A DNA stretch of 64,000 nucleotides from Bugula neritina. Taxonomy: Eukaryota; Animalia; Bryozoa. Below the pieces are notes generated by a model. It saw only the letters and a list, made by a program, of their open reading frames with translations, was not told the origin of the DNA and did no database searches. The DNA lies in contig OZ037767.1 of assembly GCA_964035545.1 (NCBI GenBank), positions 15,901,092 through 15,965,091 of the forward strand. The letters run 5' to 3'. A program made the position numbers and the translations under genes. This document shows, piece by piece, positions 37,188-61,797 of the stretch (the first letter of the stretch is position 1; each line of letters opens with the position of its first letter).

Positions 37188-40100
37188 ATGAAGGTTTTAA
37201 TTCTATCTTGTCTGGTAGCAGCAGCTTTAGGTAAGTTGGAACAATTAATTAGCAAAAAATTGCCAATAATTTTTTCATTAAATTTAATGCTTTGCTGTTT
37301 ACCATGAGTTTAGATCTTAAATATGTAGTGTTGTGATTACACAGTATTCCTGTGGTGTAATTGGTTAGCGCGCTTGCCCCCAATCCAGAGGTCTCGGGTT
37401 CGAATACTAGCAAAAGCAAAAATTTTTTTTCAGAATTTTAGACCGTCACCACACCGATCAGGACATAGTTGTGAAAAGTGAACAAATGTGTTGATAATTT
37501 AGATACTTATTTTTGTTTGATGTTTACAGGTTGTGGAGAAGTTCTAGAGGGTGTCACCGGCACGTTTACTTCTCCCGGACACCCAAGTGACTATGCAAAT
37601 AACCTCAACTGTGAATGGACCATCAGTGTACCTAGTGGAAATATTCGTCTCAGCTTCAGTCGTTTCGAATTGGAGGCATCTAGTACATGCGAATATGACA
37701 AATTGGTGGTAAGCCTTAATATCAATAAAATATTATAGCAAAGGTATATGATTATACTAGTATATATACTCTAATTTAGGTCATTGCTATAGGCTTACCT
37801 TACAAAAAATAAATTATTCAGGGTAGGAAATTAATTAGTGAAAATTAAGAAATTACAGAATATTTAAAGTAATCATTTTTTAAATTAATTTTTTGTAAAA
37901 CAATGGAAGCATTTACTTTTTATGTAGCTTTCAAGTCTTGGTTATAAAATTCCCTTTTCTATAGGTTATGAACTGCTAGGCTGTTTAACTCATGCGCTAC
38001 ATTATTGTAAACTTATTTCTCTTACATCTCAGATTTTTATTGGACTGGGTTTAAAATTAGAGTATATCAAATACTGAATGACAAATGGCAAGTAGCAAAT
38101 GCTAAACGGGAAATAGCAAATAATTTTAAATGAATTCCAAGCACTAAATAACAAATTATACCATCTAATAAAATGCAGTAAAACTCACTCTATTAAAACT
38201 ACTATTAACTAATCAAACTTATTATTTTTACCTCATTATTTTACTTTATAAATTATAACTAGTATAAATCTAAAAGATAATAAAATTTGTAGTTTAGCAA
38301 AAGACACCCTAAATAACAAGTAAAATTTACTAATGTAATTTAGCATAAATCAGCATTTTTTCGAAATTTCAGCAAATTATGTGATTTTTTTAAAATTAGA
38401 TAACAATTTGCTGCTTATATAGAATGATTATAAGCAGGTTTGCTTCAACAAGTAGGATACTGTGGTTTAAACCCTTATTTCTGCTGCAATAACTATGTTA
38501 TGTTACGTTCTATACCTATTTTTATCCAAAATGTGATCAATAAAATAAATAAATTCTGATAATTCGACAAAATAAGGAGAGAATCAATACTGCAGGTGAG
38601 AGATGGCAGCTCTAATGGAAATGTTCTTGGCACTTTTTGTGGATCATCCATTCCTGGCGAGATTGTCGCTTCTGGCAGAACTATTGTGGTCAGGTTTACT
38701 ACTGACAGCTCAATTGCACGCGAAGGATTTTCTGCCAGATGGGAAGGTTGGTAAATTATCATATAAAATATGTATTGTAAAATATATTTTGCTGATGTGC
38801 TATACACATAAATGTTTGTGCTTGCATGTGCGCGAATTTACCTGATTTTGAATTTATTATTATTATTTGGGAATAATGTAGAAATGCAAACCTCGGAGAG
38901 TAGCCGTGGTCTAGGGGTTAGAGCGTTTGCTTAGTAAAAAACACGAGATTATAGGTTCGAACCCCAACAAAGGTCATTGGTGATGTTAGGAAGAACATTC
39001 AGTCATAATTGCTTCTGTGTCTCACTTAAATAAGTCCTTAGCCCACTTTAACAAAAACTCCTTCCATCAAAGGTTTCCTCACAGGGATATAAACTATAAA
39101 CTTCCTTGAGTGAGTGAGTGAGTGAGTGAGTGAGTGAGTGAGTGAGTGAGTGAGTGAGTGAGTGAGTGAGTGAGTGAGTGAGTGAGTGAGTGAGTGAGTG
39201 AGTGAGTGAGTGAGTGTGTGAGTGAGTGAGTGAGTGAGTGAGTAGAAATTCAAACCTTGCACAAAGTCAAAAGCATTCAGTGTTGCATTTCATATATTTT
39301 TGCAGTCAATACTGGCCCTATAGTAACTACTCCACCATCTAGCGGTAGTTGTGGTGGTGCGCTCAGTGGTGTGACTGGTACATTCACATCGCCAAACCAC
39401 CCCAACCCATACCCTGCAAGTGCAAGCTGTGAGTGGACCATCACTATACCAGAGGGACGAGTTGCTCTTAAATTCACTACCATGGATATTGAGTCTACAT
39501 CCGGATGTTCCTACGATTCTGTAAAGGTAAGTAAAACTGACTAAAATTAAGCTAACCATCGGGATTTGAACCACAGACCTCTGGCTTGCAAGCGGCACGC
39601 TAACCAATTACACCACAGGGGCTGCTGGGTTAACTCAACACTACAAGCACTAAAGTGATATATCGTGGGAGATGTAGTGTTTAGACTTTTAGTAGCCCCT
39701 GTAGTGTAATGGATAGCATACACTAGCTGGCAAATTGGAGGTTTTTGATTCGGTTTCCAGTGGAGGCAATTATTATACAGAAAATTCGACATTACACGCT
39801 GATTTTTGCTAAATAAATTGATTTGATGTGTTAAATTTATCCTATAGGTTGGTTTCTTTTAAAAAAAACTTCCATAAAAAATAAGCCCCACAAAAATATT
39901 TTTGGTAAAACAATATTAAAGCATTGTAAGCCAAAATCTTAAAGCATAATTTGACATTGAAGACTAGAGAGTTTGTGAAAAATTTATTTGAAAACCTATT
40001 CTTAAAAAAACTATTCTGGTTATTTTTTATTAGAAAATCCAGTTTTATAGTATTATTGTATTTTAGTTTTTGCTTCTGTTCTTAGTTAATTTTGGGTTAG

Positions 40101-59700: not shown

Positions 59701-61797
59701 CAACAGTTATCTTTATTATAATCGGCTTTTCTACTGATGGCATCAAATCTACAATATATCAGTTAGCTTTAAAATCTTCTAGAAGCTGTTTATTAGGTTT
59801 CTACTCTGAATCTTTCTAGATACACTTCTTCAACATTGAAGGTAACATCTGGAGAGCATGACATGACTACAGTGTCTGGCAAAGAACTAGATCATGCTGT
59901 TGAGAGAGTTTTCATTGTTAGTAGTTTAACACACATCATATTGAAAAGTTTAAATAAAAGCTGAAATGAAAAAATTAATTATTATAAATAATAATGATAA
60001 AAACTTGAATAAAAATTATCAATGATTAATGTCAAGAAAATTAGGTTTTGAAGTGCTTTTAAGTTTTACTATAATGAATATTTATAATTAGTCAATTTAA
60101 TTAGCATTAGCGTCTTGTTTATGTGAAAAAAGTCTAAAGCTTCATAGATATTTTAGACAAAGCAGCTATGCATGATTCTTAGAGCATCTTATAAATTACA
60201 ATGACACACATTGTTTTTTTGCAAAAAGAACTTGTGTGCACAACTTTATTTTAATGAGTATTTAAATGCAAACTATTAAAACATGTTTCATTAACATTTC
60301 AATGAATCAGAAATTATTTACCTCACCTAAATATTACAATGAAAGTCTTTTAATGAATCTACTATGTTATGTTACTCATAAATGCGTAATATACATTAAT
60401 TGAACAACATACCAATATTATTTTGAGGAAGGTCCAGTATTATGGAGAAATTGAGAAAAGCCTGTGTTCTAGATTAGAAATGTAGCGAAAAAAGTTATGT
60501 TTTCAGAAGAATTTCAACCCTCATCTTAAACCAAAAGTTAATAAAAATTTTTAGAGAACTTAAGCTATCTCAATTTCCCCACTGCTGCTCCTAAATAATC
60601 ATTTTTGTTTTAGCATGAGTCGTATGCAGGAACTGAAGCTGGATATCCGAATGACATTGCTCTGGTCAAACTGCAATCACCCATAACATTTGATAACTAT
60701 AGAAGACCTATCTGCATGGCCGACCCTGGAGACAGTTTTCTTGGAAACTCAAATTGCCGCACCGCAGGTAAAATGACTTTACTTTACCTGCATGCGACAC
60801 AATTTTGTCTTCGATAAACAAATTGAGTAAACTGCTTTCAAATTTTGAGAGTTTTAGTTTCTAAATTTTATCAATTTATTGCTGGTATAACTTGATTATG
60901 ACATAATTTAATTAAATCCATATAATTATCTATCGTTGGCATTTTTGTAAAGGTTGGGGTTATACTAATGGTACAGGAAAGGAAAATGTGCTCAACGAAG
61001 TAGCGGTTAGCGTTGTGGAACAGTTAACATGCTCCAACAAATGGGGTTCTGACTTTATCAACAATAAGCATATCTGTGCTGGGAATGGTATCTCTGGGAC
61101 GTGTAGCGTGAGTTGATCAACTCTGAGATTGTATTATCTTTTGCTTCTTATCTTTCTGCCTTACCTTTCTGTCTTCTGAACTAATACCTCTTGAATAATG
61201 AACTGACACCTTCTGAGTGATAAGCTGATACCCTCTGAATAATGAACTGACACCAGCTGAGTGATAAATGGATACCTTCTCGATCAATGATAAGCTGGTA
61301 TAATACATTATTATAGTTGGCTGGAATAGCAGCTAGTATATTCCTGTGTCACTCAGAATTTACTTTACGCTTAATGTGTTCACATGAAAACAGTATAATT
61401 ATACATAATATGTGTTACTTTAAAAAACTCTGTTTTAAAATTCATTATGTACCACGTTACACCGAATAACCCACTAAGACACCATCTTGTGTCACTTATA
61501 GTTGAATATCGGAATGCATTTTTATCTGTAAGGAAATTAGATTGTGCTATATTTGTATGTAATTTATTATTTTGATTATTTTGTAGATTCTGTTATCATT
61601 ATTTCATTATGTTATAGAGAGATGGTGGTGGCCCACTAGCATGCCAAATGCAACGAGATGGAACAGAAAGGTGGGTTCTAGCTGGCGTATCTTCCTTTCA
61701 GAAAGCTGAGTGCAACAATGCGGGTGGGTACCCTGGCGTGTACAGCAGTGTAACCAACTTCAAAGACTGGATCACCGTTACAATGAGAAACAACTAA
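53718..61797 (+). CDS. Secreted CUB-CUB-(6-Cys module)-serine protease homolog, catalytically dead; 11 exons, ~547 aa
   Basis: Exons: 53718-53763, 54488-54666, 55210-55360, 55886-56109, 57032-57176, 57746-57868, 58456-58645, 59820-59916, 60614-60767, 60953-61107, 61618-61797; total 1644 nt in frame with the same intron phases as the 37188 gene. [13 protein letters not shown] and NDIAL are present, but CSRDGGGP replaces CNGDSGGP. Confidence 0.92.
54949..55200. repeat. (TA)n/(CA)n/(TG)n compound microsatellite
   Basis: Direct reading. Confidence 0.95.
56405..56830. mobile_element. PIF/Harbinger-like MITE with ~100-bp TIRs and an internal second right end
   Basis: GCCTAGGGCCACAC...GTGTGGCCCTAGGC flanked by TAA/TTA; 56660-56728 repeats the right terminus. 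Confidence 0.8.
59358..59558 (-). mobile_element. tRNA-derived SINE family A, reverse orientation
   Basis: The reverse complement shows GTGGTCTAGGG..GGGTTCGATCC..GGCCATTGATGATGTTAGAAAGAAC. Confidence 0.7.

Follow-up and report, generated by a model that had tools for sequence, protein, structure and literature searches.

A stretch of 64,000 nucleotides (nt) from the bryozoan Bugula neritina (GenBank assembly GCA_964035545.1, contig OZ037767.1, positions 15,901,092 to 15,965,091 of the forward strand), here called the window and numbered from its first letter, contains two tandem paralogous genes on the + strand, gene A (37188-45654) and gene B (53718-61797). Each has 11 exons and encodes, in the same order, a signal peptide, two CUB domains, a short module with six cysteines (the 6-Cys module) and an S1 protease domain, giving predicted products of 545 amino acids (A) and 547 amino acids (B). 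The catalytic triad is intact in A, and in B the catalytic serine has been replaced by glycine. B is very probably a functional pseudoprotease, that is, a serine protease homolog (SPH), and several roles can be proposed for it with differing confidence.

The gene models were built from stop-free frames on the + strand (ten coding pieces and a first exon for each gene), after which donors and acceptors that keep the frame were chosen. All 20 of the 20 introns are GT-AG, the series of intron phases (1,0,1,0,1,1,2,0,1,0) is common to A and B, and the 11-exon open reading frame (ORF) of gene B is free of stops. The exons are listed below; L001 is an intronless contig that carries the ortholog of gene B and is described further on, and P0163 is a protein of another bryozoan, Watersipora subatra. 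Residues of the protease domain are given in chymotrypsin numbering, and UTR denotes an untranslated region.

Gene A exon 1: 37188-37230, + strand, ATG and signal peptide; a TATA-like box lies about 58 nt upstream at 37130
Gene A exon 2: 37530-37708, + strand, first half of CUB1; Pfam CUB E 1.6e-14; colinear with P0163 residues 17-75
Gene A exon 3: 38596-38746, + strand, second half of CUB1; Pfam CUB E 1e-8
Gene A exon 4: 39306-39526, + strand, Pro/Ser/Thr linker and first half of CUB2; Pfam CUB E 2.9e-15
Gene A exon 5: 40371-40515, + strand, second half of CUB2; Pfam CUB E 2.8e-5
Gene A exon 6: 40937-41065, + strand, 6-Cys module C-x5-C-x6-C-x10-C-x5-CC; no Pfam family
Gene A exon 7: 41443-41632, + strand, tether Cys, R/IVGG at 41490-41495, extra Cys45 at 41583-41585, His57 at 41619-41621; Pfam Trypsin E 1.2e-16
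Gene A exon 8: 42546-42642, + strand, S1; 81% identity to the corresponding Watersipora exon
Gene A exon 9: 43641-43791, + strand, S1; Asp102 at 43680-43682
Gene A exon 10: 44845-44999, + strand, S1; C191-N192 at its end, with Gly189 and Ala190 as the base of the pocket
Gene A exon 11: 45478-45654, + strand, G-D-S-G-G-P with Ser195 AGT at 45484-45486, SWG at 45553-45561, stop TAA
Gene B exon 1: 53628-53763, + strand, 5' UTR from at least 53628, ATG at 53718, signal peptide; coding 53718-53763
Gene B exon 2: 54488-54666, + strand, first half of CUB1; Pfam CUB E 1.8e-15; an L001 block
Gene B exon 3: 55210-55360, + strand, second half of CUB1; Pfam and L001
Gene B exon 4: 55886-56109, + strand, linker and first half of CUB2; acceptor 55886 set by L001
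Gene B exon 5: 57032-57176, + strand, second half of CUB2; Pfam and L001
Gene B exon 6: 57746-57868, + strand, 6-Cys module C-x7-C-x6-C-x9-C-x5-CC; L001
Gene B exon 7: 58456-58645, + strand, tether Cys, R/IVGG at 58503-58508, Glu43 at 58590-58592 (Gly in P0156, the protein encoded by L001), His57 at 58632-58634
Gene B exon 8: 59820-59916, + strand, S1; weak GTTAGT donor, confirmed by L001
Gene B exon 9: 60614-60767, + strand, S1; Asp102 at 60653-60655
Gene B exon 10: 60953-61107, + strand, S1; C191-S192 at its end
Gene B exon 11: 61618-61979, + strand, R-D-G-G-G-P, SFQ at 61693-61701, stop TAA at 61795-61797, 3' UTR to at least 61979; coding 61618-61797

Sequence searches used single exons, and full-length comparisons used P0156 (B-like) and P0163 (A-like). 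In both genes, Pfam recognizes CUB halves in exons 2-5 and Trypsin (PF00089) in exons 7, 9, 10 and 11, where the scores range from 24.6 to 61.6 bits against a cut-off of 20.6. The R/IVGG activation site and the cysteine framework are kept in both products, with 25 cysteines after the signal peptide in A and 24 in B. A and B are 58% identical overall, with 42-71% identity from exon to exon; given an identity of only 58%, the duplication is therefore old. No third copy was found within the 64-kb window. An earlier account of this locus, made from the letters of the window and called here the sequence-only reading, had described two 11-exon paralogs with common intron phases and had credited gene B with a whole ORF, a signal peptide, nearly the same cysteine framework and an R/IVGG site, and the rebuilt models agree with it on each of these points.

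The additional cysteine of gene A lies at 41583-41585, near position 45 (F-H-F-C-G-G-C), where seven of seven relatives have serine, and it leaves A with an odd number of cysteines. Long, interrupted (TA)n and (CA/TG)n microsatellites occur at 54930-55205, 62740-62900, 32500-32800 and 41190-41400; one is located directly 5' of the acceptor of gene B exon 3 and another within intron 6 of gene A.

The active sites of the two products are clearly different. Gene A has His57 (CAT at 41619), Asp102 (GAC at 43680) and Ser195 (AGT at 45484), together with Gly193 and the SWG segment. In gene B, His57, Asp102 and Asp194 are kept, as they are in A, but position 195 is Gly (GGT, 61624-61626), position 193 is Arg (AGA, 61618-61620), position 43 is Glu (GAA at 58590), SFQ (61693-61701) stands where A has SWG, and C-E-G stands where A has C-G-G. 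The sequence-only reading had reported the intact triad of A and the R-D-G-G-G-P motif of B at these codons, as well as Arg193, SFQ and C-E-G, and all of these can be read there. Thus, B has an S1 fold with a substituted catalytic residue, and the same Gly195 is present in P0156. Arg193 and Glu43 are absent from P0156 and are specific to the lineage of the window's gene B.

It could be argued that B is still a protease, using an unconventional nucleophile or substrate-assisted catalysis, inasmuch as His57 and Asp102 have been retained in both species. However, position 195 is without a replacement hydroxyl or thiol, the oxyanion-hole Gly193 is Arg in B, and Gly216 has become Gln. We know of no precedent for an active S1 enzyme with Gly at position 195, and residual catalysis by B seems very improbable.

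A more prosaic explanation would be that gene B is a decaying pseudogene or that Gly195 is an error of assembly or sequencing. The only points in favor of this idea are that the nucleophile has been lost and that positions 193 and 43 have changed as well. The contrary evidence comes in large part from P0156, a protein of 547 amino acids encoded by a 1912-nt Logan contig (L001, run SRR4020085), which matches each B exon in order with 94-98% identity and is 96% identical to B overall. L001 aligns to gene B in 11 blocks that end at the exact exon borders, with 90-96% nucleotide identity, and includes both 5' and 3' UTR. Because it has no introns, it is therefore derived from spliced RNA, and its block borders confirm the model of gene B, down to the weak exon 8 donor and acceptor 55886. 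Unspliced contigs from sibling runs cover the introns around exon 7 with about 77% identity and 20 gaps, so the source of L001 is a related species rather than an allele of the window. P0156 reads C-S-G-D-G-G-G-P and C-G-G, and it shares both Gly195 and SFQ with B. Thus, the suspicion that Gly195 might be an assembly error has been dispelled, since an independently assembled sequence of a related species has the same residue. The question of whether gene B is expressed and spliced has likewise been answered by a spliced, transcript-like contig, which is that of the ortholog in the sister species and not the window's own.

The degree of constraint on gene B can be estimated from the same pair. 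Nonsynonymous and synonymous divergence (dN and dS; their ratio is omega) were obtained from Nei-Gojobori counts over the 542 codons that are wholly within exons, yielding a dS of 0.218, a dN of 0.019 and an omega of 0.085 (0.051-0.133 by bootstrap). When the domains are taken separately, omega amounts to 0.086 for CUB1, 0.056 for CUB2, 0.026 for the 6-Cys module and 0.115 for S1. For A versus B and for A versus Watersipora, at 58-72% protein identity, dS is saturated. The sequence-only reading had held that an omega well below 1 with Gly195 conserved would support a functional pseudoenzyme, and this is the pattern observed. An omega of 0.085 therefore indicates a functional pseudoprotease rather than a decaying gene. 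Given the intact 11-exon ORF, canonical splice sites throughout, the recurrence of Gly195 in P0156, the spliced L001 and an upper bound on omega of 0.13, decay or error has been rejected as an explanation for gene B; it is scarcely credible.

If selection has preserved B, it is of interest to know where B departed from its active relatives. For this purpose, columns were called invariant when they are identical in six homologs that bear Ser195, namely A, P0163, P0167 (described below) and proteins from Lingula, Potamilus and Owenia, a set that covers bryozoans, a brachiopod, a bivalve and an annelid. The B lineage has changed 17 of 81 such columns in S1 versus 0 of 30 in the CUB domains and the 6-Cys module, and gene A has changed 1 of 95 columns that are invariant in the others, the Ser-to-Cys change at 41583. 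Fisher tests of this asymmetry give p = 0.0056 and 0.00025. The changed sites of B fall near positions 39, 43, 96, 138, 172, 190, 192, 193, 195, 213, 215, 216, 219, 230 and 232, as inferred by counting from landmarks, and would mostly line the oxyanion hole and the S1-S4 subsites. In an identity matrix and a neighbour-joining tree for which exon rows were placed separately on the alignment of stored proteins and the columns pooled, the S1 domain of B is 41-46% identical to the outgroups versus 50-57% for A, and B sits on a long branch. These comparisons suggest that the cleft was remodelled in a burst after the duplication and was then held by purifying selection, with the address modules left untouched. 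A change confined to the cleft, unchanged targeting modules and later constraint make up, in unusually clean form, the signature expected of an enzyme that has been turned into a binder.

The closest protein and synteny matches of the window come from the cheilostome bryozoan Watersipora subatra. P0163 is a protein of 544 amino acids from that species (GCA_963576615.1, OY755164.1) with 59-81% identity to the exons of A and 72% overall; its 11 exons are laid out as in A, and its domains follow one another in the same order. Upstream of A on the + strand, at about 25900-35500, there is another multi-exon gene with CUB-like pieces and a transmembrane stretch at about 34574-34690. This gene is colinear with a 688-amino-acid CUB gene located 5' of P0163 (L002 1-8594), and the colinear upstream CUB/transmembrane genes therefore make A and P0163 positional orthologs. 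Unlike B, P0163 carries G-D-S-G-G-P and is active. Its name, 'ovochymase-like', was assigned automatically. In true ovochymases, which are polyproteases, several S1 domains are interspersed with CUB domains; A, B, P0156 and P0163 are unlike them in having a single S1 domain each. In the tree, A and P0163 group together with 80% bootstrap support, and B with P0156 is sister to that pair. Thus, the duplication may predate the split from Watersipora, with B subsequently lost there, and long-branch effects are possible.

Other relatives are more distant. P0167, whose source (L005) is the transcript-like environmental contig Ga0393224_005341 (JGI 3300036163), has 423 amino acids with one CUB domain, a 6-Cys module and an active S1 domain; it is closer to A than to B, with 65% identity to A overall and 73% in S1. 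CUB-plus-S1 proteins of the same length from Lingula, Potamilus and Owenia are 39-48% identical. A search of a representative library with exon 11 of gene B returned mostly multi-domain polyserases, along with two scaffold proteins (Ruditapes and Owenia) and no close ortholog; a profile built from these two proteins together with the S1 exons of A and of B then brought up the informative relatives. A search for fragments with the S1 part of P0156 yielded nothing beyond P0167 and an unspliced piece of exon 7 (P0459), with no ortholog of A from the sister species, and a scan of JGI metagenomes with P0156 gave only distant CUB matches of 30-50% identity. In the literature on bryozoan CUB proteins and serine proteases, nothing was found on this family, nor any study of an S1 protease in Bryozoa.

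The loss of Ser195 after duplication is in itself very common. In Tenebrio, 125 of 269 S1A genes are predicted to be homologs of this kind, many of them arising from duplications (PMC11172050). Among the relatives fetched here, 43 of 494 have a residue other than Ser at position 195, in a sample that is biased by a first query consisting of B's own G-D-G-G-G-P exon.

What, then, might B do? The sequence-only reading had proposed that A and B constitute an enzyme/cofactor module. This proposal is not supported as it stood. The adjacency of the genes is a leftover of tandem duplication. The pocket of A contains Gly189, Ala190, Gly216 and Ser226 and, by established rules of S1 specificity, should be non-tryptic, of the chymotrypsin or elastase type. 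Since Arg would precede the cleavage site in both zymogens, activation of B, or of A itself, by A is improbable, and if the pocket has been read correctly, a third, trypsin-like protease must activate both. Furthermore, Watersipora has an ortholog of A without a B nearby.

A looser relationship can be envisioned. In this model, A and B would be secreted by means of their hydrophobic leaders as mosaic zymogens, and both would be cut after Arg at R/IVGG, the cysteine before the site tethering the chains as in chymotrypsinogen. B keeps Ile16 and Asp194, which form the zymogen switch, and it could be moved to a binding-competent shape by an upstream Arg-specific protease other than A. Cubilin CUB5-8 and PCPE-1 give the best alignments with the CUB halves, and all four CUB domains have, in alignment with those proteins, the acidic residues Glu/Asp/Asp (in F-x-L-E, Y-D and T/S-D-S). 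We take these positions to form a ligand-binding calcium site. The CUB pair would then direct B to a ligand of the type that A binds, where its dead cleft could grip a protein without cutting it, so that B would regulate this extracellular pathway without catalysis. We infer that the proteins are secreted and that cleavage acts as a switch, and the same holds for the ligand and for any connection with A. As a whole, the idea that B is a cleavage-activated, non-catalytic binder, addressed like A and regulating the same extracellular process (decoy-leaning variants included), appears to have about an even chance of being correct.

Within this idea, we favor a role as cofactor or adaptor over simple decoy action, given that the dead S1 domain of B has been conserved. 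MAp44 and MAp19, which are non-catalytic splice products of MASP genes, occupy MBL and ficolins without cutting, and B might likewise be a pure competitive decoy at the CUB docking sites of A. Such a role would be consistent with the common CUB-CUB architecture of A and B, with the conservation of key positions and with PDB relatives that include MASPs and MAp19. For a decoy, however, the CUB domains alone would suffice, yet the dead S1 domain is constrained (omega 0.115) and the zymogen switch has been kept; moreover, the known decoys lack a protease domain. We regard a pure decoy as decidedly unlikely.

The main rival is an independent role in binding. Here B would be a secreted binder in its own right, acting in adhesion or pattern recognition, as an opsonin or as a growth-factor-like ligand, in the manner of the crayfish masquerade-like protein, azurocidin or HGF, and its position next to A would reflect tandem origin and nothing more. 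The age of the duplication (58% identity) and the Watersipora ortholog of A without B are in keeping with this explanation, as is the thorough remodelling of the cleft, which suggests a new partner. In addition, the transcript of B from the sister species is full length, and no A-like protein of 142-957 amino acids was returned with it, hinting that the two genes are differently expressed. On the other hand, 30 of 30 invariant positions in the CUB domains and the 6-Cys module have been kept along with the activation site; this is no proof, but it fits a context shared with A better. An independent binder is somewhat unlikely, though a serious candidate.

It should be noted that a number of points count against the regulator model, in which B is constrained as a non-catalytic partner in the process served by A. 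The estimate of constraint is a single pairwise comparison with one sister species, and the recent appearance of Arg193 and Glu43 in the window's lineage could mean that the cleft is still drifting in places. The signal peptides and the calcium-binding residues of the CUB domains were recognized by visual inspection and alignment rather than with a dedicated predictor. No B-like sequence, and hence no dead twin, is present in the 10 kb downstream of P0163, even at an E value of 5, and a search of the annotated Watersipora genome with P0156 found no B-like protein; since the ortholog of A there has no B nearby, A can therefore exist without B. Finally, a partnership of B with A is put forward only as a hypothesis.

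Known systems offer partial parallels. Clip-type SPHs are established cofactors of prophenoloxidase activation (PMC10643895; PMC11818254). B is like the arthropod clip SPHs (CLIP-A, PPAF-II, Manduca SPH1/2 and masquerade) in the replacement of Ser195, commonly by Gly, and in having a tethered 6-Cys module upstream of S1. The arthropod proteins are secreted, need cleavage and serve as non-catalytic partners in cascades (PMC10643895), properties that B would be predicted to share. B differs from them in that it has no Pfam CLIP match and no clip fold match, contains two additional CUB domains, has a classical R/IVGG site and comes from a bryozoan. MASP, C1r and C1s resemble A and B in that they are S1 zymogens addressed by CUB domains, and that the same CUB address is used by a non-catalytic relative, and the CUB exons of the window match MASP and MAp19 chains in the PDB. 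However, no EGF or Sushi/CCP match to Pfam was obtained for any exon of A or B, so that the CUB-EGF-CUB-CCP-CCP-SP architecture is not that of the window genes, and vertebrate MAp44 and MAp19 arise by alternative splicing and are without S1. B, in contrast, has retained its S1 domain and is encoded by a gene of its own. The best CUB relatives of solved structure are PCPE-1 (CUB-CUB-NTR, an enhancer of BMP-1) and cubilin CUB5-8, in which CUB-CUB binding occurs without catalysis; unlike B, neither has an S1 domain, and an enhancer role for B would be by analogy only. HGF and MSP are S1 pseudoproteases that become competent for binding only after the zymogen site is cut. They are unlike B in having kringles rather than CUB domains as N-terminal modules, in the replacement of several triad residues and in being vertebrate proteins. 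B is thus a serine protease homolog of uncommon architecture from a little-studied phylum.

The 6-Cys module presents a separate problem. Exon 6 of A and of B encodes six cysteines ending in CC-x-P directly upstream of S1, and by itself it gave nothing meaningful against Pfam or PDB sequences. The CLIP family (PF12032) was not matched at E values up to 1-10 by exon 6 of either gene or by ten homologous modules, and no clip protease or clip structure was found in a PDB profile search or among the fold matches. A module of the form C-x(4-8)-C-x(3-8)-C-x(7-13)-C-x(3-8)-CC precedes S1 in proteases of bivalves, brachiopods and an annelid; carriers are P0063, P0157, P0179, P0195, P0213, P0214, P0243, P0254 and P0269, in addition to the window exons at 40937-41065 and 57746-57868. 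Pfam Defensin_beta (PF00711) was detected in two Dreissena homologs (E 0.012 and 0.019; 16 and 15.4 bits, below the cut-off of 21), with no match for the modules of A and B. A profile of the module searched against PDB sequences placed beta-defensin 1 in the top eight positions with all six cysteines in register, at weak E values of 0.12-0.4 for these eight and of 0.12-0.7 over the beta-defensin 1 matches. In AlphaFold (AF2) predictions, the top fold match of model 1 (predicted local distance difference test, pLDDT, 68) was crotamine, and for model 2 (pLDDT 81), 14 of 14 fold matches were peptides of the beta-defensin fold, with template modelling (TM) scores by target of 0.48-0.58 and E values of 2-8. 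These four weak signals agree, none of them being significant alone, and they suggest that the module may be beta-defensin-like and clip-like in position only.

From this it follows that the phrase 'independently evolved', which the sequence-only reading had applied to the pair, holds only in part: it is plausible for the loss of Ser to Gly, and the independence of the locus from clip architectures is unsettled, as the module may be of a beta-defensin/clip-like kind. Lophotrochozoans may have in this module their counterpart of the clip prodomain. A stronger proposal would combine two claims, that the module is such a counterpart, perhaps even a homolog, of the clip domain and that A and B are a pair made up of a CUB-addressed protease and a cleavage-activated pseudoprotease cofactor; this combination is quite doubtful.

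The window has a GC content of about 32%, or about 29-40% outside one GC-rich insertion, and is rich in (TA)n and (CA)n runs, with multi-exon genes that have short introns. Its other features are as follows.

46866-52054, + strand: truncated long terminal repeat (LTR) retroelement between A and B, part of neither; its 300-nt LTRs are 97% identical
37326-37440, 39564-39643 (minus strand), 46357-46411 (minus strand) and 63220-63298: interspersed repeat with a tRNA-like T-arm GGTTCGAAT, at least 4 copies, 76-80% identity

The retroelement has a GC content of 49-60% in a region of 30-35% GC, and without it the spacer between A and B is about 2.9 kb. The only coding remnants recognized in it, all in broken frames, are the zinc knuckle of gag, an aspartic protease and the H2C2 finger of an integrase, and no reverse transcriptase was found inside it. 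Gene A carries two copies of the tRNA-like repeat, one in intron 1 and one in intron 4, and ARAGORN called no tRNA gene in these repeats. An open frame at 63504-63998 on the minus strand matches Sulfotransfer_2 (E 1e-24); it probably represents the final exon of a gene for a carbohydrate sulfotransferase, the rest of which would lie beyond the end of the window. Exon-like open frames of other genes are present at 7400-8200 (minus strand), 11700-18800 (+ strand) and 29460-29987 (+ strand); one of them, of 176 amino acids, is rich in lysine and arginine and has no Pfam match.

Pseudoproteases are common, and most of them are without known relevance; here, the constraint on one can be measured from public data, and its active twin A provides a natural control. 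The beta-defensin-like prodomain, common to proteases of bivalves, brachiopods and an annelid, offers a lead on the origin of clip-like prodomains. If the doubtful combination of a clip counterpart with an A/B pair were nevertheless true, the cascade logic of serine proteases and their homologs, with a defensin-like prodomain, would either be older than the arthropods or have originated on two occasions, and the bryozoan pair could serve as a minimal two-gene system. If B modulates A, the pair would provide a compact model of a protease and its pseudoprotease outside the arthropods and vertebrates.

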